Origin: Lepidodermella squamata
Taxonomy: Eukaryota > Animalia > Gastrotricha
Direction of reading: 5' to 3'
Assembly (NCBI GenBank): GCA_047495785.1
Contig: JBLDXI010000032.1
Location: 3,472,001-3,536,000, forward strand
DNA: 64,000 nt
The translations under genes and the position numbers were made by a program. Within the stretch, counting starts at the first letter, position 1, and each line of letters opens with the position of its first letter. A model generated the notes under the pieces. The model saw only the letters and a program-made list of their open reading frames with translations. It was not told where the DNA came from and made no database searches. Shown one piece after another: positions 7,902-62,125 of the stretch.

Positions 7902-8708
7902 ATGGATCGTCCATTGAGCGGAAAATTAGGCAGTAAAATTCCAGTTCTTACAGGTCCGTGGAATGGTGGGTCCTACTCGACGCCACTTCAACTGCTTGAA
8001 AATCGCCCTAAATCTGAGCGCCAGTCTCGAAAGGTGATGGTTCTAGCTTTGTCATCGCTCGAACACGGCTCAAAAATTCAGCGGCCTGTTTCAGGCGTCA
8101 AAGCGACAACTTCAGCTGCGGTTAGACGGCGCCGGTCTATGAGCTTACAACAGTTGGCACCGATTGATGAAGAGCCGTCGCGACAACAACCATCACCGCA
8201 GGTTTTTAGCGAACGTAGCGAGAAGATTGTTCAACAACAAATCAGAGCAGCAAGTCCACGCTGGTTGGAATTGCGACCTCGAGGCAGTGCTCATCCTGAA
8301 TACGTCGAACCAATCAGCGAGGAAGACCAGCGTAATTTCGAGCAGTATTTCCCGAAGGTCCGAACACCTCGCAACTGCAATTCGGCAAACGCGGCCAACC
8401 TCGCAGGGCGTTATGGCGTCCGGGTGGCGACTGATGCGCCGATGAACCTCGCTAATCTTCGAATCGAAGGTCGTAGCAGTATTAATAGCATCCCAGCGCC
8501 GAAAGCTTCGTTCTACCATGCTTATCCCCCACCGCCGACCCCAAGTAACGAATTTGGCAGTATTGTATCGCTGCGGTCAAGTGCCGTCGAAACGCCTCGA
8601 TTAACCGGGCGCCATCTTGAAGAGATTTTCAACTCAACCGCGCCATTGAATCAGAAGCATGCACAAAGACAAGGCCTTTCATCTGCGGGATATTCATGGG
8701 CGAAATAA
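7902..8708 (+). CDS. Disordered orphan protein 2
   Basis: 268-aa ATG ORF with AT-rich flanks and AATAAA at about 8728; motifs SKIP, LAPIDE, LRIEGR. Confidence 0.75.
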   Translation: MDRPLSGKLGSKIPVLTGPWNGGSYSTPLQLLENRPKSERQSRKVMVLALSSLEHGSKIQRPVSGVKATTSAAVRRRRSMSLQQLAPIDEEPSRQQPSPQVFSERSEKIVQQQIRAASPRWLELRPRGSAHPEYVEPISEEDQRNFEQYFPKVRTPRNCNSANAANLAGRYGVRVATDAPMNLANLRIEGRSSINSIPAPKASFYHAYPPPPTPSNEFGSIVSLRSSAVETPRLTGRHLEEIFNSTAPLNQKHAQRQGLSSAGYSWAK

Positions 8709-9052
8709 CCACTTGATACTTTTTTGCAATAAAAAATGAAAATTTGCCCTCAAAGTGCGTGCTGTCAGTCATTTCAGGTAGTATAATTATTCCGTGTGTC
8801 GGGTCTTTTGATGCGCTGCGTATAGTAAATATAAGGCATCAAATTAGTTTCTTGCATCGCATTGATTTGTTTTTAATGTGAATACCACATAGAATATGTG
8901 TGAAAATACGCCGAGCTCGTCGCAACCAGCCTTGGTTTCCCAGCAGAATAGTGATTGGCAGATCGGGCATGACTCCAACAGCATGCTGTGCTTATTCGAC
9001 TACAAGCGTTTAGAAAATCTATCCGCGAAACTAACAACAACAAAAGTATTTA

Positions 9053-10372
9053 ATGGCCGACTCTGGGATAGTCGATTCGAGGACCTCTTCGACCACCTTC
9101 CCAGCTTCCTCGGCGACAAGCTACAGCAGCAGGATAAGATCCGAAGAAGTTCCGTCTTCCTCCGAACTAAATAGGCAAAAAACCTTCCGGAAAATTCTTC
9201 TCCCAAAACTTATTGTCGCCGAGCAATCACCTGTTTTCAGTGAATCTCGCAATCGCAAAAATGGCAAGAAAGGTAGCAAAAGTGTACCTGATAAACCTAT
9301 TTTACCCCCCGTCGACCGGACTAAAACTATCTTGATCGAACGGGATCCAACTAACAAGTTCCAGCTGCCAGAAGTTCCAGTAGCTGCTTACGAAGATCAA
9401 AGCAACGAAGACCGGTCTTGGCAATTCCTACAACGCAGGTTGGAAGATACAACTTTGCAGGAAGAATATCAAGTTGTAGATGGAAACTTGAAAAATCGTC
9501 AAAATTTGGCTGCGATGGTTGCTGAGCAACTAAACAGCGACAGGCACCCACTAGCGACAGGGACCGAAACTTACGAAAAAACCCTGGAGCAAATTCTGAA
9601 CAATGCAAAAATCGCTACTCAACTTCGAAAATTGAGGCCGATAAAGAAGGTGGAAAAGATTCGAAATACTAAGCCGATGAATGGCATATCCTCGAGCGAA
9701 AGTGGCAGCCAAGTAAACTCTGTCTTCACAACTTGGTCCAATGTTCACATAGCCGTTAATGTGACTCATAAATTCGGCAAGAAGAAGATGCAGAGAACAT
9801 CCGGCGATAACCCTGATGTCAAAAAAGACGAATTTCGGGACCCGGTCATATATCAGGCTCAACTTGTGACTATGGCTGGAGAAAAGCGAAATATCAGCGT
9901 TTTTATCAGTTGTAGCGGGCTGAAAAATCCTGCAATCGCTGACATATCGACAAATCTGCAGCAGTTTTACTACATAGAATTGAGCCGAATTCACCTGAAT
10001 GCCAAGAAACAACAGGCTTATCAAGCGGTTGACAAGCAAAAGGTATACATCATTAGCTGCTCAGTTTTATTATTTTCCAAATTTTTTTCATAGATATCGG
10101 CGTGTGACGTAGCTGTAGTCTGTTACGATGAAGAGTACGCCAATGACAACTACTGCATAGCCGAGGCTAACATGATTGCTGGCTTCAAAAAACCGATGGT
10201 ATTCGTGCAAATGCAAAGCTCAGCGAGGGCCAAAAAATGGCTCTTACTCCTCCTGAAAAGGCACAGTATATCGTATGCCTTTGTAAGATACACTGATTTA
10301 TCACCTCTTGCTGGCATCACTAAGGTTAAGGCTGCAATAGAAACGACACTTGATAAATTTTATTCTTATTGA
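9053..10372 (+). CDS. TIR (TIR_2-like) domain protein 1 with long disordered N-terminus
   Basis: Exons 9053-10042 and 10094-10372 (51-nt intron). TIR pattern VFISCS...ISACDVAVVCYDEEYANDNYCIAEANMIAGFKKPMVFVQM...KW; AATAAA at about 10405. Confidence 0.8.
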
Positions 10373-10712
10373 GGGTCTCGAATCAATCAACATTTAATGC
10401 TTCAAATAAACAAAGTTTATTTACGTTATAATTTTCGCACGTTTATTTTGATAAGCCTGCGAGATGTGAGACGTTCTCCATGACACCATTTTCCCAACCT
10501 GTAGCAACCTTTAATATTGATTTATCTGGAAGCTTCGGGCTATCGCACGTCACGGCGTGGCGAAATCGACTCAACCACCTAAAACGTAAGTTAGACAACG
10601 CTTATATTATATTATATCACCGATCAATTGCTATCTGTCTTCTTTATCTAGCCGAGGCTATAAGCAGTACTCAGCCTGTGCACTCATTGAATAAGGCTTT
10701 AATCTAGCTTTC

Positions 10713-11420
10713 ATGGACTACAGCGTGGAGAGAATGTTCTCAACTTCCTACTCGTATTATCCTCCTCCAGCTCAACCATTATGGATAGTAAGGAATTCAA
10801 CGACTAGTTCAGTTTGCAATACCAACGATGATGACGCCATGTCGATTTCATCGGGGTTCAGCCGGTAAGAAACCTTTCAAATTTTCACAACAATTCACCT
10901 GTTTCGATTATACAGGGCTAGTCTGAAGAGCGCCAAGTCGTCACAGCCTTTTGAATCAGTACCTCCTAGTCAAAACAGCCCGCGAAAATCGCGGTTACAA
11001 TCAGCCCCGCTTGAAGTTCTGAAATGGACCAACAAGTCGGGCGAATCGAAATACCAAAGTGTTGCTCACTTCCCCCTTATAGTCTCTAAAATGCCGTTTC
11101 TAAGCGTGGAAGGCCACTCATCCTCGGCAACATCAGCTCCCCCGTCAGTGGCGTCATCTTACAGCAGGCCTCAAACTCAGCAATCAGCTGTTACACCTCA
11201 TCCGAAATCGGCGATGTCTAGTTCGATGACATCTTTGCAAGTTGCGAAATATGAGAATAACACAGCGATGGAGCGCCTGCAAAGAGTTTCAGACATTTTA
11301 GCGAAAAATCGCGAATCTGCGCGATCGAAGAGGACGCGGCTAAATCTAGCTGGTGGGCTAACTGTCCTGTACCCATTTCCCCACAAGCAACAATTATTGA
11401 ACTATGACTACAAAATCTAA
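10713..11420 (+). CDS. Disordered orphan protein 3 (two exons)
   Basis: ATG 10713 (MDYSVERMFSTSYSYYPPP); intron 10865-10915 (GTAAGA...TACAG) joins in frame to the 11091 ORF; LSVEGH motif; AATAAA at 11451. Confidence 0.7.
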
Positions 11421-11637
11421 CTTGCATAATATATACAGACATTTTTATCGAATAAAATGAGCTAACGGCAACGTGTGATTTTCTCGTTTAATATTCAGTG
11501 GCAGCGTTTCAACAACAATAGCATTTTTTGTGATAAAATCGATTTCCTACTCGCAGGAATCTCTTCTCGTATTATAGTCGACTTTGAACAAGAAATCCAT
11601 CACCGTTAAATCAGTTAAATCAGTTGATTTCGCATAA

Positions 11638-12336
11638 ATGAAAGTAGAACGGCCCGTTTACCACCTTCCGGTTACCAACGCCGATTTCGTCCCAATCAAG
11701 TACTTGCGCGATTTTCGTGAGCTGAATTTTCATCAAGGCAACAGCAGATTTGCAGCTATTGCTACAATGTCAACAGCCTTCTTGAAACCGGCAGATGCGA
11801 CCCGTTTATCCAACTTACCGGTTATAATCGATGGCCAGAGTAATGATACTGCTGATAGAACCTCGAAGCGAGTTAGATTCGCTGATACCGATGAAGGCCA
11901 GCCTTCGCCTATTACCGGCTTGATCGTGCGAGGAAATGCGAATCTCGCCGATTCACCTCAAAATCCTAGCAATAAAACATCAGCGAAACCTGTCGAACTA
12001 CCCCCGCTATTCCAGACAACTAAGCAGCCAACAGAGAGCAAGAGCCGATTTTGGCACAAGAAAAGTCGAAGGTCAGATGAGGTGACCTTGACTTTTAACA
12101 ACAGCGGAATAGAAGTGAATGGTTATGGATTTAATAGCAAAAATCACTACACCGCCTCGAACGAATCGCTTCAGGTGATGCCACCTATCCACTCGTCTCT
12201 TGGCCACAGACCGTTTAATCGAAAGTTGACACCGATGAAAAACGGCCGGCTTAAAATTTACACGAGCCCTGCTATGGACGAACAAGCATTAGCCGATCTA
12301 ATTTCAGCGAATTGTCACTCATTTAAATTTCTGTAA
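11638..12336 (+). CDS. Disordered orphan protein 4 with PP1-type RVxF motif
   Basis: 232-aa ATG ORF with KRVRFADTDE, LIVRGN and LPPL; AATAAA at about 12455. Confidence 0.75.
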   Translation: MKVERPVYHLPVTNADFVPIKYLRDFRELNFHQGNSRFAAIATMSTAFLKPADATRLSNLPVIIDGQSNDTADRTSKRVRFADTDEGQPSPITGLIVRGNANLADSPQNPSNKTSAKPVELPPLFQTTKQPTESKSRFWHKKSRRSDEVTLTFNNSGIEVNGYGFNSKNHYTASNESLQVMPPIHSSLGHRPFNRKLTPMKNGRLKIYTSPAMDEQALADLISANCHSFKFL

Positions 12337-12698
12337 TTTTCTCAGCTCTTCGGGTTTATGTAGTACTCTCGTCGTCTCTGTATAACTAACTTCCTGCTCT
12401 TTGAGGTTAAAATTAGTTCATCTTTCCGTGGTGCATTTCTTGAAAACGGACTTGAATAAAATCATCGCTTTCTTGCGAAATTTGGCTCGTGTTTTGAATC
12501 GTTGGTTTCCACGTAACGTGCACCAAGGAGTATGACAGGCAAAGTATAAAAAAACCTGCCGATCATCACCCACAGTTCACAGCTATTACCGTCATTCGCA
12601 AATGAAAAATCGATTTTACACCACCAACCACCGGACTCGGCTACAACACGAAGTGTAAAACGAATCATTATTTCACTACCGCATTTTACAGCCACCAA

Positions 12699-14186
12699 AT
12701 GTCAAACAAATCCGGGCCTGATTTAGACAACTTTACTCATCAGGCTAAAAAACGACCGAGAACTGGGAAAGTATGGAACAGATTCAACTCGAAGAGAAGT
12801 TACCTGATCAAAGCTACTAGCAGATCGACGCCGGATTTGGAGAATCTGGTCATTCGCCCAAATACGACGATGGATAGGCCTAAAACGCCCGAAGCCTCCT
12901 CGCCAATCCCCGAAAGACCAGCTTCGGCCACTCGCCACTCGAATAACCTGCTTGGGCGAGCGTTATTGATGAAATATCGGCTAGGAAATCTTGCTCCGCC
13001 GGGTGTTTACAAGCTATCATCAGAGCATCTATCCCTGCCAATAAAGCCTGAACGACGAGCAAGCACGCCGAGTGATCGGCAACCTGGGCTAATTCTGCAG
13101 GGCAACCCGCTTCGAATCGGCAAAAGAGCAGATCATGTCATTCTCAGCCAAGAATGGAAGCCATCTGACAGCCTAACTGTGAAGGGTCCCATCAGCAAAG
13201 AAGGGCCGAAGTTTCGCTCAAAATTGTCAAGATTCACCATCCCGATGCAGCGACAGGTAGAGATACCAGCGACGGAAGAAGTAAAGATTATCCCGCGGAG
13301 CCGTCCATCTCTCACTGGTGAACTCGCTGAGAGATATCGGAAGGTTGCTATGGGTGTTTTCGAGCAAGATGTTATCAACGAATACATGGCTATCGGTGAT
13401 AGCCTGATTTCTTACAAGGATGCACTGCGAAACTTTACGAAAAGCTGCCGCGTCTCCGGCAGCGAGGCGACTGGTACCGAGCTGACCCTACCAAGCCTCG
13501 AATCTTCTGTACAAAAATTTTCTGTTACGCTAACTTCTGCTGGTAAGAGGCAAACGTTCAGGCAACGTGATATTCCGCCGAATATTCTAAATAAGATGCA
13601 ATCGTCTAATGGCAGTGGCAGACGTAGTTCTGTTGAATCTGAGCTGGCTCCGATGGATCCGATAATTGAAGCTAGGCCTAAAATCTACGTGTGTTTTCAT
13701 CCTGATCAAAAGCTCTACGTCAAGGAGATATGCAAAGTCTTGAAAACGATGAATTTCGAAATGAGATACAGCAAAAAGGTTGACCCGGATGAGATGTATC
13801 AAGTGACAGAACAAAGGGTGAGTTTTTTTTGTTAAATTCGGAGAAAAATCTCAAGGCGTGAATTTCAGATTTCCAAGTGTGACGCAGCTCTGGTCTGCTT
13901 CAGCGCAAACCTGCCTTCATGCGAGTTGTCTATGCGGGAAATAGTGATTGTAGCTGAAATTCACAAGCCATTCATCGCCGTGCAATTAGTCGATGACGAG
14001 CCACCGAGTCAATTTTTCCAGGTCGTTTTAAATGTCAATGTGGATGATTTCTATCAAATTTCCGCTCGCACGCTCGATCACGATGCTCTGGAGGTTGCCG
14101 CGGCTTTGATAAACGAAATATCTACGTCAAAAGCTACGGCACTTCGGCGGCAAAGTTCGACCCGAAAATCAGGCCAATACCCTTGA
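12699..14186 (+). CDS. TIR domain protein 2 with long disordered N-terminus
   Basis: Exons 12699-13817 and 13869-14186. IYVCFHPDQKLYVKEICKVL...ISKCDAALVCFS...SMREIVIVAEIHKPFIAVQL; intron at the same TIR position as in protein 1. Confidence 0.8.
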
Positions 14187-14712
14187 AATTTATAGCACTC
14201 TCATCTCATAAATTAATCAACCTTTGATTGATTGATTTGGCAAGGTTGAACTTTTGAGAGATTGATTGTTAATAAACAGGAAAGCGGAACGTTCGATTAC
14301 TTTTCAGCGTGGGACTTGTTTTCACGTAGGCTTTGAATTCTTAAAGCCGCCTCGCTCTAACAGTGGGCTTTAAGCAATTTTGGTATGAAGGAAGCCAGTT
14401 CGTAATAGGGGTTTCCGCCTTTGTGCGCGATTATATTATTATTATTATATAGCGATTTCGCGGTGAAATCAATGCTGCACTGTGCGCTACGGGCAACCTA
14501 TGCGCAATTAACGGCCAATGCAAACACGGTTATGATGAAAAATGCATGAGCGCAAGCCTGGCCGCGGTTGCATTTTGTTATTTTTCGCACCTCGTCGCCT
14601 AGCTGAGCACTGGTATGCCGGTGTCACGCTTAATGACTGTCTGCTTGTGTGCAGCACAAAGATTCTGAGCAATGTCGCTATGAACTTTAATCTATATAGG
14701 ACTTTCGTTAAA

Positions 14713-15366
14713 ATGAAGAGATACTCAACTATGACTAATCTTCAGGAGCCCAATACCGAGAACTCTAACGTAACACCTTTCGTCGCTAGCCAAACCAACA
14801 GCCACGCAAACGTCCTTAACAAATACAGCCCATATCGGCCGATTTTAAGCAAACTGTTCAGCCTTTCCACGACTCAGCTCGCAACGATAAACGAGGTGTG
14901 TGAAGATCCGGACGAAGATTCGGAATGGGAAGAAGATGGCTATGTGCAGTATTGGATGAAGCGTAGTAAAACGTTCGACGGCGTGTTGTCCCAAAAGGCT
15001 CGGCAGTCCGCTCAACCTCGCCAGCCCGAACAGGAGCTTTCCGTTATGGTCAACCACTTCCAACAAATGATCGCCGCAACCTCGGATAAACCAAACAAGG
15101 TTAGCCCGAAAGGACGCGGTAACATGCTGCCGTTCACTCGCGGGCCTGATGGTAAAACGAAAATACTCATCAAATGGCCGCCAGCTCCTCGGTCGGAAAA
15201 TTCGTACCTAGGTACCCAGAGTCGGAAAACTGCGGTGAGGCGGACCGCATCGAACGCGTTATCGAAATCAATGCCAAACACGCCTAACGTTCCTTTCATA
15301 AAATCCAACTTGATTCGCGGCAACAAGAAGCCATTACTTTCTGTCCAAAATCGCCCGTTATGTTGA
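14713..15366 (+). CDS. Disordered orphan protein 5 (ORF is open from 14542)
   Basis: ATG 14713 follows an acceptor-like TATATAG; LATINE motif followed by an acidic patch. Confidence 0.65.
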   Translation: MKRYSTMTNLQEPNTENSNVTPFVASQTNSHANVLNKYSPYRPILSKLFSLSTTQLATINEVCEDPDEDSEWEEDGYVQYWMKRSKTFDGVLSQKARQSAQPRQPEQELSVMVNHFQQMIAATSDKPNKVSPKGRGNMLPFTRGPDGKTKILIKWPPAPRSENSYLGTQSRKTAVRRTASNALSKSMPNTPNVPFIKSNLIRGNKKPLLSVQNRPLC

Positions 15367-15471
15367 CAAAAAAATTCCTGCTATTTTATACGCGCAATCT
15401 TTCTATATTGTCACGCTTTATTTCACTTTTCAAACGCGATTATGGTGATGAAATAATAAATAATTTTAAAA

Positions 15472-17622
15472 CTAGATTTTTGCTAGTGATCTTCTCGCTT
15501 TTGTTATCGATTTCCGGCGTGATGATTCTAGATGGTTAGGCAGCGAAATCGAGCCCACAAGTTTACTTAATTTAGGGTGTTTCGAACACGCTGCTACCCA
15601 TAAACTCCGTCGTATGACTAGAAGGTTCAAGGTCAAGTTCGCCGAACTTATTAGGACAATTGCTGCGATGAAAGTATGCACCCAGAGTTTTGCGACGTGG
15701 TTTTTCATGCCAAGCAGAATTATGGCCGTGACGACGTAGATGATCGATTGGCAAATCACGCCGCGCACTGTTTCCACCACATCTACAATGCGGTTGTGCC
15801 GCAAGTTTCTGCGCAATCGATAAGCAAAGACGCAGGCGACGCCTAGCAACAAGGTCAAGTAAAGCACGATTAAGTCTAGCCAATAGCTCGGCTGCGTTAG
15901 AGTGACGCAAATAGGTGGGCTATCGATAAGCTCGGACATTGGGCCGTTGTAGTAATCGATGGAAAACAACCGATCTTTATGCTGATCGACCGCGAAGTAC
16001 CAACTTAAGAGAAAGGGAATAGTTACGACACAGCAGATTGCCGTAAAACTCAGCTCGAAAATTGTCTGCTCCTGGCGTGATGTAGGCCTATTTCGTTCCC
16101 ACTTGGCCAACTTCAGGCTGGTCACTGAAGGCCTGGGTAGAGGATCAAAGTCGAATTTCCCACTCTCCATCGGAGTTGTAGGTGTCTTGGGCGAAATAGC
16201 TGGTTTTGGGAGATCAGTCAGAGTGTAAACCTTCACAACGTTTGCAGGGGCAGTTTCGAGATGAGAAGCTTTCATCAGAGACACAAAAACACTGACATTA
16301 GCTTTTTGTTCTTCTGTTCGATTTGAAACTAAGGAAATTCCTCGGTTGTTTCGCCGACCTGCCAGAATCAATCTACTAAGAACGAATCCGTGCATAAGTG
16401 ACAAGGCGAAAATGCTTGTTATCGGCCGAGCTGCGCACCAAAATGGGTTCGATTCACCAGTCACGAATGAGATGGCGGAAATGTTGTAAAACAGCCCGAT
16501 TACGACAACTAATAATCGCTGAGGCAAAGTTCTTTGCATAAATTCCCGGGTTCTTCGGAGATAAATGCTTAGCAGGAGAATAGACAATTGAAAAATTGTT
16601 AGAATTGAAGCTAAACCTAGGATGGTTTTGAAGACATAACGAGACAACTTTTCTTCATCCTGCTCTGGGCCAGTAAGGGTTGTTAATTTCGTAATACTAA
16701 TCCGATCGTCGGGACTTCTGCTGATTTCATAGTTTATCTGCATCTCAAAGGTCGACTTTCCAGTTGAAGCCGGTGAAGCGACGAGTAATCTCGGCTGATT
16801 GGGCTGAATTGCCGTAGTTTTACCAGAAATCACTGGTAGAATCCTCAGAGCTTCATTACCGCAGAAAAGGCTTTCGGAAAAAGAGTCTCCGATGAAATAT
16901 ATACCGGTTGTCATTACGTCGTTTGCGCAAGAGTTTGGGAATTCAAGAGATCCGGGTGATGAAGTGCTTAGGATTCGAAATCTCCTATTTCCTATCCCTC
17001 GAAATCCCGACACGCGGCAGAAAAAGTTCGCGAGGTCGAGGTAGCTCATCCCGTTAACTATAACCAGCCCATTTGCGTCGAGACCCGCAAATTTCGAAAT
17101 TAACTCGTCGTCCAAGTCGAAATCAATCATAAATCTCGAGTAGGAAATTCGGTCTTTCAAGTTTTCAGACAAGTTCACAGCAACTTCGATTTCGAGCGAA
17201 TACTTTGGGAAATAATCGATAACCAATATTTCTTCTGGCCTTATAATTGTGTCGACAAAAGAAGCGATGAGCGATACGGAAACTTGTCGGTTATTTCGGA
17301 TTAGGTCGCAAGTTGGAAAGCCAATCTTGCGATGCCAGGCTGTAAAAATTCGAGGTAATCTGCGACAGCTGTCAGCCGAAAAAGGTCCAATGGCTAACGA
17401 AGCAGAGTTTTCCTCCAGGTCTTGAAATAAGTTATCGTTGAATTTTTCGCTATCAGAAAAAAATGTCGCGCTAATTGATTCCTTCGCTACAGCTGAAGTT
17501 ATTGCTTCGCTGCATTCTCGGGAATCAGATCGAATAAAAGTCAAGACATTTTTAGAGTTGGAATTGCTAATTAGCGATACCAGAACGCAGGTAATTAGAA
17601 CATCTAACTTGAAGCACCACAT
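15472..17622 (-). CDS. Divergent class C GPCR (GABA-B/GPR156-like 7TM, shortened Venus-flytrap-like ectodomain)
   Basis: Signal peptide; LAIGPFSADSC..L......W resembles the ANF-receptor fold N-terminus; seven hydrophobic helices with class C patterns CAARPITSIFALSLMHGFVLSRL and LLGVACVFAYRLR; intronless 716 aa. Confidence 0.75.
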   Translation of the reverse strand: MWCFKLDVLITCVLVSLISNSNSKNVLTFIRSDSRECSEAITSAVAKESISATFFSDSEKFNDNLFQDLEENSASLAIGPFSADSCRRLPRIFTAWHRKIGFPTCDLIRNNRQVSVSLIASFVDTIIRPEEILVIDYFPKYSLEIEVAVNLSENLKDRISYSRFMIDFDLDDELISKFAGLDANGLVIVNGMSYLDLANFFCRVSGFRGIGNRRFRILSTSSPGSLEFPNSCANDVMTTGIYFIGDSFSESLFCGNEALRILPVISGKTTAIQPNQPRLLVASPASTGKSTFEMQINYEISRSPDDRISITKLTTLTGPEQDEEKLSRYVFKTILGLASILTIFQLSILLLSIYLRRTREFMQRTLPQRLLVVVIGLFYNISAISFVTGESNPFWCAARPITSIFALSLMHGFVLSRLILAGRRNNRGISLVSNRTEEQKANVSVFVSLMKASHLETAPANVVKVYTLTDLPKPAISPKTPTTPMESGKFDFDPLPRPSVTSLKLAKWERNRPTSRQEQTIFELSFTAICCVVTIPFLLSWYFAVDQHKDRLFSIDYYNGPMSELIDSPPICVTLTQPSYWLDLIVLYLTLLLGVACVFAYRLRRNLRHNRIVDVVETVRGVICQSIIYVVTAIILLGMKNHVAKLWVHTFIAAIVLISSANLTLNLLVIRRSLWVAACSKHPKLSKLVGSISLPNHLESSRRKSITKARRSLAKI

Positions 17623-18145
17623 GTTTTTTTTATGATATAATGGCTCTGATTTGTGACGCCGACATTGTTTTAGTTTTTTCGCTAACCTTCTCCCCCTCTT
17701 CCTACGAATCGAGGCATTTTATTAAGGAAGCTTGCCGTTTCGAGGTTAGACAGGACGTAATTTTTTTTATTGTCTGTGAAAAAACTTGTCTGCGTAGTCT
17801 CAGAAGAGCGCAAGAAAAAAATACGTAAAAGGGCAGTACCCAGGCGGCGCCGATAATTTCAATTTACGTTAAATCGATCTGCGCGGCAGCGAGGAAGGTA
17901 TTTTATTATGATGAATAATTAACGAGATCGAGAACGAAAACCGGAAACGTAGGGCCTTCTGTAAATACGCTGGCACCTTGGCTGCGTTTAGCAACTATAT
18001 AACGCCTATCATTCGATTCGCCTTTCCACGTTCGGACTATCAAAAATGATAGCATGGTATTTTGGGGCAGTCGGCTTCGCTAAAATAAAAAACGCCGCCG
18101 CTTGACTGATATTTATCTTGGCAACATACTAGCAACAGGGCGATC

Positions 18146-20190
18146 ATGTTCGACGACGATCTATTGACTCCATCGCCGTTCACTTTGCCATCAGTTGGTC
18201 TTTCATATTCACCCTCGCCGTCAGTCAATTCGCGCTATAATAACAATTCAATGGACTATGTTTTAACTGAACGTGAGGGGGCGACGTCGTTTTTCACGTA
18301 TTACACACCGCCCCGGGATCATCCACGCCCTAGAACTATGACTCCGACCAAGTTCCGGCAGGACAAGTTTATCACCCCGAAGTTTCTAGTGTCAACCGGT
18401 GGCCCGGGTCTGAAGCGGAATATTCAAACCCTGACGAAATCCCCAGTTCGCCATTCGGTGCCGCCGCGACTTGTCACGCCAAACGCAGTGTTCTATGAGG
18501 CCGTTGCGCCCGAAAAAGTTCCAGCAGACGCCCTGCAGACGCCGCGAAAATCACCGCAAAAAGTTGCGGAGAAATACCCGTCGATTTACCCGCGCCATAG
18601 CAACACGCCCCGAGCTGCTAAGGAATTTAAAACCGCCGAAGGTTTCATTTCATCGCAAAAGTGCCGATGGGAAGCTGCCGATCGAATCCTAACCGATCGC
18701 AGTAAGACAATGATTGCATGGACGCCGAAGGCCTCGCCGTCGAACGGAGCTTCCCCGCTGTCCGGGTTCTACCCGGAAATCACCAACAGCCGCACTGTTA
18801 CGCCGTCTAAATATCGACCAAATTTCACGAGCTCGTCAGTGAACACGAACGCTCGATTTATTGATATCGATATCGCCGCTTCAGCATCGCCGGCTACCGT
18901 AGTTTACGTGCAGCCGTTGACAAAAGCTGGGCGTCTCTTAACCCCGACAAAATACCGAAATCCATCGTCCAACTCCCGGCGCGAGCCGCAGGTCCTGTTC
19001 CCCATGGCTTTTCTGTCCAATGTCTCGACCCCGTCGCAAGACCTGGAAGTTATGGCGATTAAAGCCAAGGCTGATGATGTGATATCTTGGTCGTCGATTT
19101 CCTCATCAGAGGACGACGGAGAAAAAACTACAGTCGCAGGGAAATCTGCGAAAAAGAGTGTCAAAGTCACGTTCAACGAGGCGATAGTTGTTAGGGAAGG
19201 GACCAAAACCACCGTCTCCAATCCAGGCTCAATATGTCGAGTTGGTCTTAGGCACCGATCTTCATCGGCTGATTCAGTCAGACCCTGCGAGTTCACGAAG
19301 GACGAATCTTGGCAGGAAGACTCGACAGTTCTTAGGCACAAATTAGAAATCAGCAAGAATGACATAACGCCATGCCACTACGACGTTGCTGTCGAAATTC
19401 TGACCGGCGACTTTTTCAACGAGGTCAACGAACGATTCGGCCGGCTCTACGTCAAACACATTATTCAACTAGCGAATCGGCCGAAAAAGCGAGCTCAATC
19501 ACGAGTCATTATGAGGCATAGCCTAGATACCAGCTCGAAATTTGAGCAGTCTTTAGCCGCGGCGAAAGCTGTATTACAGAAACGGCCGCATCGAACGTCT
19601 TTGACTAGAGCTCAATCGGCCGAATGTTTACTGCCTTTGATTGAAGCGGAAACAATTAGTGCCGATGATGCTGTTATTGACCTGAAAGATGACGACAGCG
19701 ATTCGGATCAGCCCGGACGTAGGCGGCGGGTGTTTATCAGCTACGCACCGGAACAAAAGCACATCGCCCACGCAATTTGGAAGAAACTTCTACCAATCTA
19801 CGACGTGGCGATCGATGAAAATGTTGATCGATCGAATCCGCCCACGGAGGAGATAAAGAAAGGGGTGAGTTGCTGCGTATTTTAACAATGCTAAATGTTT
19901 AACTAATATCGATTCGTCCGTTCACCTAGATCAAACGAGCTGATTTGGTAATTATGTGCTATAGCGAGAGCTACGCATCGGTTATATACCCGGACAGTGA
20001 GGCTTATGTCATAAATGAGTTGCGAAAGCCGGTGATGCCGATATGTGTCGAGCAAGATTACGAGGCTGAAGGATGGCTGGCGAAAATTCTCAGAGCCGAC
20101 TACGTAACGCCTGAAACAACTCTGCTAGAGCCTGTCCTAGATGAAGATCTCGACAGCCTGTTGACGGACATCGAACATTTATTGCCTTAA
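18146..20190 (+). CDS. TIR domain protein 3 with long S/T-P-rich disordered N-terminus
   Basis: Exons 18146-19864 and 19930-20190. VFISYAPEQKHIAHAIWKKL...IKRADLVIMCYSESY...DSEAYVINELRKPVMPICVEQDYEAEGWL is a typical invertebrate TIR_2 pattern. Confidence 0.85.
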
Positions 20191-37599: not shown

Positions 37600-48456
<10,857 letters not shown>

Positions 48457-51147: not shown

Positions 51148-53643
51148 ATGCGACTGTTAATGCTGAGCCGGCTTCGATCGCCGTTTCAAGCAGCCTATCG
51201 ATTTTGCAGTCAGCCTCCAAAAGGGTTCGAGAAATTTTTTGATAAAAAAGCGCCTCAGCCGAACAAATCGGCTCAGCCTAAACAACCAGAACCTGCACCA
51301 AAACCTCAGGAGAAGCCGAAAATCCCTCCTCCAGCCGGCATCCCGAAATCACAGCAGGATTATTTCTCAAAGTTCAAGTACGTTATTGGATAATTGATTG
51401 CCTAATCAATGCATTCACTTGAAACTATTGCTATTCTTCAGGATAAATACCAATTCCGGTGGTCCAGGAGGATCAGAGTCAAATCAAAACTACTGGCTCA
51501 TTGCAGCTGCTCTCGCTTCTGCTGGCTTGGGCCTCGCATTTTTGAACAATGCTAGATACCAGGAAATCACATGGAAAGAATTCGTCAATAAATATCTCAC
51601 CAAAGGTGTCGTGCAGAAGCTTGAGGTCGTAAATAAGAAGTGGGTGCGCGTTAAATTCGATCCTAACCACTTGGGCGAAGGTTCCAGCATTCTATGGTTC
51701 AACATTGGTAGCGTAGAAGCTTTCGAGAGGAATTTGGAACAGGCGCAACAAGAGATTGGCACTGAGCCCCATAATTATTTGACTGTTATTTACAAGCAAG
51801 CGATCGACTGGTAAGATCATCCTTTGTTGAATTTTGTGAAATGATGACGTTGATGTGTTTCCAGGCAATCTTTACTGACCGATAGTGCCTTAAATTGGAT
51901 TATACCTATCGCTTTGGTCATTTGGTTCTGGCGCCGATCGATGGGCCAAGGTCTTCAACAAGTTAGATTGTGAAAATCGAATGTGCCTTTTTATTTGTTG
52001 TATGAAATTAGGCTGGACGTGGTGGTGCTCGCGGAGGCATGTTCGGTTTCGGTCAAACCACTGCCAAAGTCATTAACAAGGAAGATATTAAAGCCCGCTT
52101 TGCCGATGTGGCTGGTTGTGAAGAGGCTAAAATCGAAATTATGGAGTTCGTCAACTTCCTACGCAACCCTCAACAATACATTGATCTCGGAGCGAAAATT
52201 CCGAAAGGTGCCCTTTTAACTGGTCCGCCCGGTACCGGCAAGACCCTGCTTGCCAAGGCGACAGCTGGCGAGGCCCATGTGCCTTTCATCACAGTTTCCG
52301 GATCTGAGTTCTTGGAAATGTTTGTCGGTGTCGGCCCGTCTCGAGTTCGCGACATGTTCGCCCTGGCTCGTAAAAGCGCGCCTTGCATTTTGTTCATCGA
52401 CGAAATCGATGCTGTTGGCCGCAAGCGCAGCGGGCGAAGTTTCGGCGGCCATTCCGAGCAGGAAAACACGCTGAATCAACTTCTCGTGGAAATGGATGGT
52501 TTCACGTCACAGGCTGGTGTCGTGATCATGGCTGCTACCAACCGCGTCGACATTCTTGACCCGGCATTGCTGCGTCCGGGTCGTTTCGATCGATCTATTT
52601 TTGTCCCATTGCCCGATATCAAAGGCCGCGCTTCGATTTTCCGCGTTCACATGAAGCCACTGAAAACTACGCTGAATAAGGAAGAAGTTTCGCGTAAATT
52701 GGCAGCGTTGACCCCCGGATTCTCCGGTGCTGATATCAGCAATGTGTGCAACGAAGCCGCCTTAATAGCTGCCCGAGATAACAATACCGAAGTTTTCCTG
52801 AAGCATTTTGAAGCTGCGATTGAGCGAGTTGTTGCTGGTATGGAGAAGAAGAGCCGAGTTCTTCAGCCCGAGGAGAAGAAAACCGTCGCGTATCACGAAG
52901 CTGGCCACGCAGTTGCTGGTTGGTACTTGGAACATGCCGATCCGTTGTTGAAGGTTTCGATCATACCCCGAGGCAAGGGTCTTGGCTATGCCCAATATTT
53001 ACCGAAAGAGCAATATCTGTACAGCCAACCGCAGCTGCTCGATAGAATGTGCATGACCCTAGGCGGCCGCATCTCTGAGCAAATATTTTTCGGCCGCATC
53101 ACCACCGGGGCGCAGGATGATTTGCAAAAAGTCACGCAGATGGCCTATGCTCAGGTAGTATCTTTCGGTATGAGCAAGAAAGTTGGCGCGTTGTCGTTCC
53201 AGCAGCCCGAGCGAGGTGAAATGGTGTTTGATAAGCCCTACTCCGAAGCGACTGCCCAAATGATTGATGAAGAAGTGCGAACTCTGGTCAGCGATGCGTA
53301 TAAACGCACCGAGCAACTGCTGACGGATAAAAAGCCGGATGTGGAGAAGGTTGCCAAGCTGCTGCTTGAAAAAGAAGTCCTGAGCAAAGATGATATGGTC
53401 ACCTTGCTTGGAGCTCGCCCATTCGGCGAGAAAACTACCTATGAACAGTTCGTTGAAGGAACTGGTTCACTCGATGAAGATACCTCTCTACCCGAGGGAT
53501 TAAAGGTGATTTTTTGCAACTTTTCACAGCTTAACTTGAAAATGTATTTTTAACAGGGCTGGAATATTGATAAGAAGAAGGAAGGCGAGAAGAAAGACGG
53601 CGAGAAGAAGGATGACAAGGAGGAGAAAAAGTCATCTAGCTGA
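51148..53643 (+). CDS. AFG3L2: m-AAA protease AFG3L2
   Basis: EITWKEFV, Walker A GPPGTGKT, Walker [24 protein letters not shown] zincin motif, ITTGAQDDL. Introns 51378-51441, 51811-51864, 51962-52011, 53506-53556. Confidence 0.96.
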
Positions 53644-61213: not shown

Positions 61214-62125
61214 ATGAGTCAGAGTGCTCCAGCTTTGTTTATACGATATGAAAACATTCGATCGTTGTTGTACCCACTGAAAGCTATTGTTTTCAATGAC
61301 AAAGCGAAATTATGTTTGGCTGTTTTTCATGCGGAAGCTCGCGGATTACGTATCACCGTGGAGCATGGGAAAGCTGCCCAAGCCGTAGCCTACTTGGATG
61401 GAAAGGGTTGCGACCAGTACTTACTCTCAGGCGACGAGGTGGAATTTGCTATTGATTTGCTCACTCTTATTCGATTTCTTGAAACTGGAATTTTTCCACA
61501 CGCCGCATCTACTTTCAATTCTGGACCAGTTGGCTCCGCTGCTCTCCGATTAACTTACGAACCTGGGCTGGAGAAAGCTGTCGAGGTTCACCTTGAATGC
61601 CCTACATTCTCAACGCGACTTCATCTCAAAACAATCGCTAATTGTGAGCTTCAAATGGAGAATCTCCTGGGACAGACTAGTGCAAATTTCAGCGCCAAGG
61701 TCATTTTGCAATGCGACGCTCTCAAAGAAGCATTTGTTGATCTCGATATTTCAAGTGAATTTTTATGTCTTGCAACATCTTCCGATCCAGCTTATTTACG
61801 TTTTTCTACAAACTCACGCTTAACCAGTGGTCATGTTGACTTTAATGCCGGTTCAACACATGGAACAAACCACATCGTGCAATATTTTCATTGCCGAGAA
61901 TCGGTTACTTTCAAATACCGAATGACCTTGTTCCGTGCCGCGCTCCGCGCCATGGTTTTCGGTCGCCGTGTTTCACTCCGTGTTCGATCCGACGGTATTC
62001 TAGCTCTTCAGTTTCAACTTCCTTCGCTCACTCCCGGTTTCGATGAAGATTTTGATGATTCTTGTTACACTTACGTGGACTACCTTTTCCGGGCTATCGA
62101 AGATGAAAGTCTTCTGAACTATTAA
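61214..62125 (+). CDS. RAD1: RAD1, 9-1-1 checkpoint clamp subunit
   Basis: LKAIVFND, GLRITVEHGKAAQAVAYL, KVILQCDALKEAFVDLD, VSLRVRSDGILALQF; intronless 303 aa. Confidence 0.88.
   Translation: MSQSAPALFIRYENIRSLLYPLKAIVFNDKAKLCLAVFHAEARGLRITVEHGKAAQAVAYLDGKGCDQYLLSGDEVEFAIDLLTLIRFLETGIFPHAASTFNSGPVGSAALRLTYEPGLEKAVEVHLECPTFSTRLHLKTIANCELQMENLLGQTSANFSAKVILQCDALKEAFVDLDISSEFLCLATSSDPAYLRFSTNSRLTSGHVDFNAGSTHGTNHIVQYFHCRESVTFKYRMTLFRAALRAMVFGRRVSLRVRSDGILALQFQLPSLTPGFDEDFDDSCYTYVDYLFRAIEDESLLNY

Follow-up and report, generated by a model that had tools for sequence, protein, structure and literature searches.

Among the TIR proteins of invertebrates, 'orphan TIR' and 'ARM-TIR' proteins are named classes (PMC9334734), and a further class, ecTIR-DC, is described in PMC6321704, which cites Gerdol et al. 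2017 and hypothesizes a role for its members as adaptors or regulators. Substrate-induced condensation activates sensor-less TIR proteins of plants (PMC10972746), and a phase transition does so for TIR-1/SARM1 (PMC8923663). Here, we describe three genes, g1, g2 and g3, in a stretch of 64,000 nucleotides from the gastrotrich Lepidodermella squamata (assembly GCA_047495785.1, contig JBLDXI010000032.1, positions 3,472,001 to 3,536,000; hereafter the window, within which all positions are counted). Each gene encodes a long N-terminal arm followed by a single C-terminal TIR domain, and each retains the glutamate that is catalytic in TIR enzymes that cleave nicotinamide adenine dinucleotide (NAD+).

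We read g1–g3 as soluble, lineage-specific orphan TIR_2 proteins, old tandem paralogs that would act through TIR-TIR assembly as adaptors or regulators, a reading to which we give somewhat better than even chances. TIR is their only recognizable domain and they appear to be intracellular, which places them in OrTIR, the descriptive class of orphan TIR proteins. Their closest counterparts are invertebrate TIR_2 proteins such as those of Amphiura filiformis (XP_072014355.1, P0016), Magallana gigas (XP_011440472, P0127) and Clavelina lepadiformis (CAK8679895.1, P0001). The domain aligns with theirs from end to end and has its glutamate in the same column, g3 being 32% identical to the Amphiura protein over 134 aa. 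An earlier note on this DNA had proposed looking for the architecture in relatives, and it is found in two of them: the Amphiura protein, of 535 aa, has a TIR at 403-506 as its sole domain, and a second relative (P0068, 400 aa) likewise has a domain-free N-terminal region and then a single C-terminal TIR. Unlike these relatives, g1–g3 lack a near-invariant Trp, Gly and Ser (and, in g2 and g3, a Cys), have branches 7-12 times as long as the median one, carry their intron between profile positions 62 and 63 rather than at about 52 and about 86, and possess arms with no detectable relatives.

Other described systems resemble the locus less closely. Likeness to SARM1 and Caenorhabditis elegans TIR-1, whose activity is raised by oligomerization and phase transition (PMC8923663), lies in an animal TIR_2-type TIR with a glutamate in the catalytic column; however, g1–g3 have no ARM or SAM domain, are not group-24 TIRs and replace the Trp four residues before the glutamate (E-4) by Tyr (g1 and g3) or Leu (g2), and the similarity is at the family level only (E ~3e-4 for the profile of the relatives). 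Plant TIR-only and truncated TNL proteins (PMC10972746) are also sensor-less, and the Y and E of their alpha-C motif Y-x-x-S-x-W-C-x-x-E recur in both g1 and g3, its C in g1 only; but the plant proteins belong to another kingdom, without orthology, and their condensation is driven by the TIR and its disordered loop rather than by a long N-terminal arm.

The vertebrate sorting adaptors TIRAP/MAL and TRAM share with g1–g3 a C-terminal TIR and the lack of a sensor; in these adaptors the N-terminal targeting region is short or unstructured, and they work through TIR-TIR assembly. In contrast to them, g1–g3 have no myristoylation signal (no M-G start), far longer arms and a TIR of the TIR_2 type, and they keep the glutamate, which is present in under 10% of TIRAP-type TIRs (PMC7075850); TIRAP and TRAM chains were absent from the PDB matches of the TIR profiles. 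Among the prokaryotic TIR NAD+-cleaving enzymes (Cat1, AbTir-type and ThsB-type), Cat1 is the best solved match (E 5.4e-9), with the glutamate aligned, whereas g1–g3 are eukaryotic genes with introns, lie in an animal chromosome and have no defense-system partners.

TIR identity and descent of the three genes

All three genes are arranged in tandem on the + strand, each with two exons (Table 1). Pfam was run on the separate exons, while the joined domains were scored against profiles only. Exon 2 of g3 gave a match to TIR_2 (PF13676) with an E-value of 0.0024 and 18.8 bits, covering profile positions 48-109 of 122, and exon 2 of g1 gave one at the expected profile position with an E-value of 0.077 and 13.9 bits. 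Both lie below the cut-off of 28, and the exon pieces of g2, scanned singly, had no TIR_2 match. In the Pfam check that the earlier note had asked for, the pieces themselves are below threshold or unmatched; the TIR_2 gathering score is reached by 19 of the 20 relatives checked, all found by profile, and the remaining one scores 27.3 against 28.

These relatives came from a search of 1.84 billion representatives with a profile of the three second exons, which 106 proteins match at E-values of 1e-3 or less (best 7.9e-14). Those with a name all come from invertebrate animals, namely Clavelina, Dimorphilus, amphioxus, Ptychodera, oysters, Amphiura and Physella. Scored against a profile built from the relatives only, the spliced domains reach 74 (g3), 58 (g1) and 30 (g2) bits, and reversed sequences 0 or less; the first-exon half, which had not been used in finding the relatives, contributes 16, 4 and 10 of these bits, respectively. 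When the three spliced domains were aligned with 12 relatives by hhalign, the probability was 99.4% (E 1.3e-21, 130 columns). The first-exon halves, made into a profile by themselves, gave only two matches of at least 10 bits among the relatives and none among reversed controls, and their PDB matches were non-significant. A PDB search with the exon-2 profile ranked the plant TIRs SNC1 and Roq1 at the top, also with non-significant E-values. In the AlphaFold model of g3 exon 1, a strand-helix-strand segment at residues 528-557 is alone in reaching a predicted local distance difference test score (pLDDT) of 50-66, and as modeled it fits beta-A, alpha-A and beta-B of a TIR.

On these comparisons, we regard the TIR call as secure for g1 and g3 and as good for g2, whose second exon is the most divergent of the three copies; the earlier claim that all three proteins end in a TIR is backed by the bit scores and the hhalign result. 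A six-frame profile scan of the 64 kb window, including the part downstream of the open reading frame at 14542-15366, found no TIR copy beyond these three.

In an alignment of the C-terminal 150 residues, the introns of g1–g3 fall in one column, just ahead of I-[SK]-x-[CA]-D. This intron is missing from the TIR domains of seven relatives (from brittle star, oyster, amphioxus and ascidian). Identity among the three TIRs is only 20-34% over aligned segments, and g3 scores 64 bits against the Amphiura protein and 41 bits against g1. The tree that holds g1–g3 together is nevertheless the best found, with a log-likelihood 9.5 above that of the free quick tree and a P-value of 0.66 in the approximately unbiased test (p-AU), and g1 and g2 are sisters with a support of 95 in the Shimodaira-Hasegawa-like approximate likelihood ratio test (SH-aLRT). 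Their end branches are very long, at 2.3-3.8 substitutions per column where the median is 0.32. Because the intron position is shared, the tree groups the genes and they lie in tandem in one orientation, the evidence points to a common and old tandem origin, and the local duplication proposed in the earlier note gains support from the absence of the phase-0 intron in relatives. TIR homology, architecture and the shared derived intron are established at the level of sequence.

A different intron, between about positions 85 and 86 and beside the codon of the conserved glutamate, is common to the TIR_2 genes of Amphiura, oyster and amphioxus and absent from three ascidian domains and from g1–g3. 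Judging from these genes, it is probably ancient.

The arms, their expression and their selection

The arms measure about 271-276 aa in g1, about 319-325 aa in g2 and about 524-527 aa in g3. Exon-wise scans found no Pfam or NCBIfam domain in them. In particular, no exon of g1–g3 matched an ARM or SAM domain at a Pfam E-value of 1 or below, and Pfam matched none of the death, LRR or Ig domains that go with MyD88, TLR or IL-1R proteins. The sequences have no membrane segment, the highest 19-residue hydropathy being 1.2, well below the values of membrane helices, and no N-terminus resembling a signal peptide. The absence of transmembrane, LRR, ARM and SAM elements that the earlier note had reported is thus borne out.

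FoldIndex values for the arms are -0.05, -0.05 and +0.04, compared with 0.09-0.19 for the TIR parts and 0.18-0.28 for control proteins of the window. Single-sequence AlphaFold models, which are weak evidence as they are made without an alignment, have a mean pLDDT below 45 for both models made (for g1 and g3). The pLDDT is ~30 throughout the arm of g3 and ~40 in that of g1 apart from three predicted helices (Table 1). The arms are thus predicted to be mostly unstructured, in line with the long, largely disordered arms described from the letters, the helical segment of g1 excepted.

The three arms are dissimilar to one another, and no short motif common to the seven arms and orphan proteins of the locus rose above shuffled controls. 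A word-index search with the first exons of g3 and g2 found no relatives of the arms in a collection free of this genome's own proteins, and a language-model feature search (ESM Atlas) gave no usable match for any of the three. Basic clusters occur in all the arms, among them a K-K-R-P-R cluster close to the N-terminus of g2. The arm of g3 holds 20 [ST]P sites where 8.7 are expected, seven of which are of the cyclin-dependent kinase (CDK) type [ST]Px[KR], and three copies of R-x-x-T-P-[TS]-K-[YF]-R, a motif that was not found in g1, g2 or the neighboring orphan genes. The idea of phospho-regulated arms accordingly fits g3, with its enrichment in proline-directed sites, but not g1 and g2, which have no [ST]Px[KR] site at all.

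Two public sequencing runs, X1 and X2, were compared with positions 8250-14249 of the window, which contain g1, g2 and, of the small orphan genes oA to oD described below, part of oA together with oB and oC. Run X1 is RNA-like, covering the exons and leaving intergenic DNA bare. It shows a 51-nt intron of oB spliced out at a GT..AG joint, and it contains loose contig ends that carry the exact junction between exons 1 and 2 of g2, with mismatches at third codon positions only. Gene g2 is transcribed and spliced. The intron region of g1 is not covered by X1, so that the direct view of splicing is limited to g2.

Synonymous changes make up 32 of the 35 coding variants listed in the comparison of the window with the runs, including all 11 in g1 (seven of them in exon 1, in the arm) and all three in g2. 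Indels between strains lie in non-coding DNA, two of them inside the g2 intron, or keep the frame. Because the listed variants are mostly synonymous and the indels non-coding or in frame, both arms and TIRs are under purifying selection. The synonymous differences from the window also indicate that X1 and X2 come from other strains or haplotypes. X1 further has many low-depth 'opposite strands' joints in the compared stretch, which look like hairpin-like artefacts of contig assembly.

Upstream, g1 is bounded by the stop codon and AATAAA of oA and g2 by those of oC; for g3, the boundary is a divergently transcribed 7tm_3-like receptor gene that starts ~520 nt away. Upstream sensor exons, which the earlier note had named as a possibility to check, are unlikely because separate neighboring genes bound each of the three TIR genes.

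The glutamate and the question of enzyme activity

The glutamate is one of seven positions invariant across the three second exons. It sits in the column in which 99% of the relatives have Glu, and in the PDB alignment of the exon-2 profile it is aligned to the catalytic Glu of plant SNC1. Column alignment also places correctly the helix-C motifs given in the earlier note (YCIAEA, SMREIV and PDSEAY). The profile of the relatives matches the solved NAD-cleaving TIRs Cat1, RPS4, TIR-1, RPP1, SARM1 and Roq1, and in the alignments shown the Glu column of the relatives falls on the catalytic Glu of Cat1 and RPS4.

Other conserved positions have fared differently. The Trp of V-W-x-D (W44; conserved in 96% of the family), the Gly of the BB loop (G52; 71%) and the Ser at E-6 (S79; 97%) are absent from all three proteins, and the Cys at E-3 (C82; 100%) is absent from g2 and g3. 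At E-9, g1 and g3 keep the Tyr that g2 has lost. The altered E-4 position is the one at which SARM1 has its ligand-binding Trp, and the Asp of W-x-D is retained in g3 only.

How much the glutamate says about function can be judged from the survey of Toshchakov and Neuwald 2020 (PMC7075850), in which it is present in >70% of all TIRs and >90% of TLR1/2/6/10, its frequency does not track enzymatic activity, and SARM1 was, as of 2020, the only metazoan TIR with known NAD+-cleaving activity. Because Glu is the default state of TIRs, non-enzymatic ones included, it discriminates little. The step taken earlier from a retained glutamate to an enzyme family is not supported, given how common the residue is and that other near-invariant residues have been lost. 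Our literature search found no reported activity or assay for this animal TIR_2 family.

We weighed the favored reading against three others. One would make g1–g3 sensor-less NAD+-cleaving enzymes that are switched on by clustering or condensation of the arm, possibly under phosphorylation control. It gains from the presence of the glutamate in the catalytic column of all three genes, from the Tyr at E-9 and the aromatic residue at the SARM1 Trp position in g1 and g3, from the solved NAD+-cleaving TIRs being the first matches of the relatives' profile, from the proline-directed sites of the g3 arm, and from the condensation described for plant TIRs and for C. elegans TIR-1/SARM1 in the papers cited above. 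It loses on the near-default status of the glutamate, on the three residues lost in every copy and the Cys lost in two, on the missing aromatics at E-9 and E-4 in g2, on the confinement of phosphosite enrichment to g3, and on the literature found, in which no member of the family is reported to be active. All told, we consider it unlikely. Taken gene by gene, NAD cleavage would be possible for g1 and g3, which keep Tyr at E-9, an aromatic at E-4 and the Glu, and is unlikely for g2; that at least one of the three is active seems a real but somewhat doubtful prospect, with g1 the likeliest candidate and g2 the least likely. NAD cleavage would not be our default reading of these genes. The proposed trigger is moreover not new in kind, having precedents in plants and in TIR-1/SARM1. 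The most specific version of the idea, by analogy, is that of an animal counterpart of the plant condensation-activated TIR-only enzymes, in which the long, constrained but orphan disordered arms of lineage-specific TIR_2 proteins would nucleate condensates that switch on Glu-dependent NAD+ cleavage, with the products of four co-oriented orphan genes as possible co-condensing partners; we think this quite improbable.

Very long branches, the loss of family-invariant residues, most extreme in g2, and lineage-specific arms without detectable relatives would also suit degenerate, non-signaling TIRs that serve as decoys or negative regulators, capping or sequestering other TIR proteins, or as baits for pathogen factors. 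Strong purifying selection between strains and the retention of the hydrophobic core pattern and of the glutamate speak against it, and we regard this account as improbable. It would be more radical to suppose that the gene models are artefactual or the genes dead. Splicing of g1 and g3 was not seen directly and the g2 pieces have no Pfam match, but the frames are open, the variants are biased toward synonymous changes, indels are non-coding or in frame, the spliced g2 junction is present in X1 and one exon structure is common to all three genes, so that such an error is very improbable.

The reading as soluble orphan TIR_2 adaptors or regulators would see in g1–g3 a fast-evolving branch of the invertebrate TIR_2 family, which also contains ARM-TIR, multi-TIR, Death-TIR, kinase-TIR and orphan TIR proteins. 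The proteins would signal by cooperative assembly, through regulated TIR-TIR self-association, and may take an adaptor or regulator role within the TIR repertoire of the animal. Their arms would provide docking motifs, basic clusters being common to all three; g3 would add its proline-directed phosphosites and its repeated motif, and g1 a helical segment that possibly oligomerizes.

Several points weigh against this reading. The nearest solved structures of the family are the NAD-cleaving TIRs listed above (Cat1, RPS4, TIR-1/SARM1, RPP1 and Roq1) and not those of TLR or MyD88. The glutamate has survived in all three copies amid wide change, as would be expected of an enzyme. The grouping of three long branches can be an artefact of long-branch attraction, and the disorder of the arms is a prediction based on composition and single-sequence AlphaFold models only.

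Neighboring genes and significance

Between 7902 and 15366, the window holds six compact, co-oriented genes separated by spacers of 220-360 nt, in which the small orphan genes oA to oD are interleaved with g1 and g2. Pfam matched none of these four, whose composition is disorder-like, and the listed strain variants of oA, oB and oC are nearly all synonymous. The layout could be operon-like, or it could be a nursery of fast-evolving genes. The open reading frame at 7902-8708 was considered as an upstream exon of g1, and those at 11091-11420 and 11638-12336 as upstream exons of g2; they were rejected, as they have their own stops and AATAAA signals and RNA-like coverage ends there.

Residues 13-90 of oA (7938-8171) resemble residues 416-500 of g3 (19391-19645) in a blastp alignment of 27.3 bits, 30% identical over 88 aa. 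The similarity is marginal, and none of 200 shuffles reached 27.3 bits (maximum 23.9); it hints that oA and the g3 arm may share a segment. The receptor gene between oD and g3 gave a weak match to 7tm_3 (class C G-protein-coupled receptors; E 2.9e-5), below the cut-off. Farther along, housekeeping genes lie in very large exons, among them an SMG1 kinase gene with SMG1 and FATC domains, an AFG3L2-type m-AAA protease gene and Rad1 (Table 1). The AFG3L2 of this animal, whose introns are very short, is ~83% identical to the mollusc proteins at the top of its named matches and 96% identical to an ENA contig.

Table 1. Features of the g1–g3 locus and its surroundings, in positions of the window
Feature	Position	Strand	Remarks
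g1	9053-10042 + 10094-10372	+	two exons, 422 aa
g1 exon 1	9053-10042	+	arm, then N-terminal TIR half from ~9881
g1 predicted helices	9404-9628	+	residues 118-192; AlphaFold pLDDT 50-64
g1 intron	10043-10093	+	51 nt, GT..AG, phase 0; inferred from frame, homology and synonymous-only exon 2 variants
g1 exon 2	10094-10372	+	C-terminal TIR half; Glu codon 10163-10165 in Y-C-I-A-E-A
g2	12699-13817 + 13869-14186	+	two exons, 478 aa
g2 exon 1	12699-13817	+	arm, then N-terminal TIR half from ~13674
g2 intron	13818-13868	+	51 nt, GT..AG, phase 0; removal seen in run X1 contigs
g2 exon 2	13869-14186	+	C-terminal TIR half; Glu codon 13938-13940 in S-M-R-E-I-V
g3	18146-19864 + 19930-20190	+	two exons, 659 aa
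g3 exon 1	18146-19864	+	arm, then N-terminal TIR half from ~19727
g3 R-x-x-T-P-[TS]-K-[YF]-R repeats	18341-18358, 18800-18817, 18941-18958	+	three copies, T-P-x-K-[YF]-R cores
g3 intron	19865-19929	+	65 nt, GT..AG, phase 0
g3 exon 2	19930-20190	+	C-terminal TIR half; Glu codon 19999-20001 in P-D-S-E-A-Y
oA	7902-8708	+	separate small orphan gene, AATAAA near 8730
oB	10713-11420 (exons 10713-10864, 10916-11420)	+	small orphan gene, AATAAA near 11454
oC	11638-12336	+	separate small orphan gene, AATAAA near 12455
oD	14542-15366	+	small orphan gene, beyond the read-compared stretch
7tm_3-like receptor	15472-17622	-	single exon, 716 aa, long N-terminal region, divergent from g3
SMG1 kinase	37600-47927	-	
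AFG3L2-type m-AAA protease	52039-53553		
Rad1	61214-62125		

The locus illustrates that retention of the glutamate by itself is a weak predictor of TIR enzymology. As it stands, g1–g3 are three divergent additions to the orphan TIR proteins of invertebrates, a large set whose functions are unstudied. If they should prove active, the animal TIRs that cleave NAD would extend beyond SARM1, with activation by an arm rather than by a sensor.

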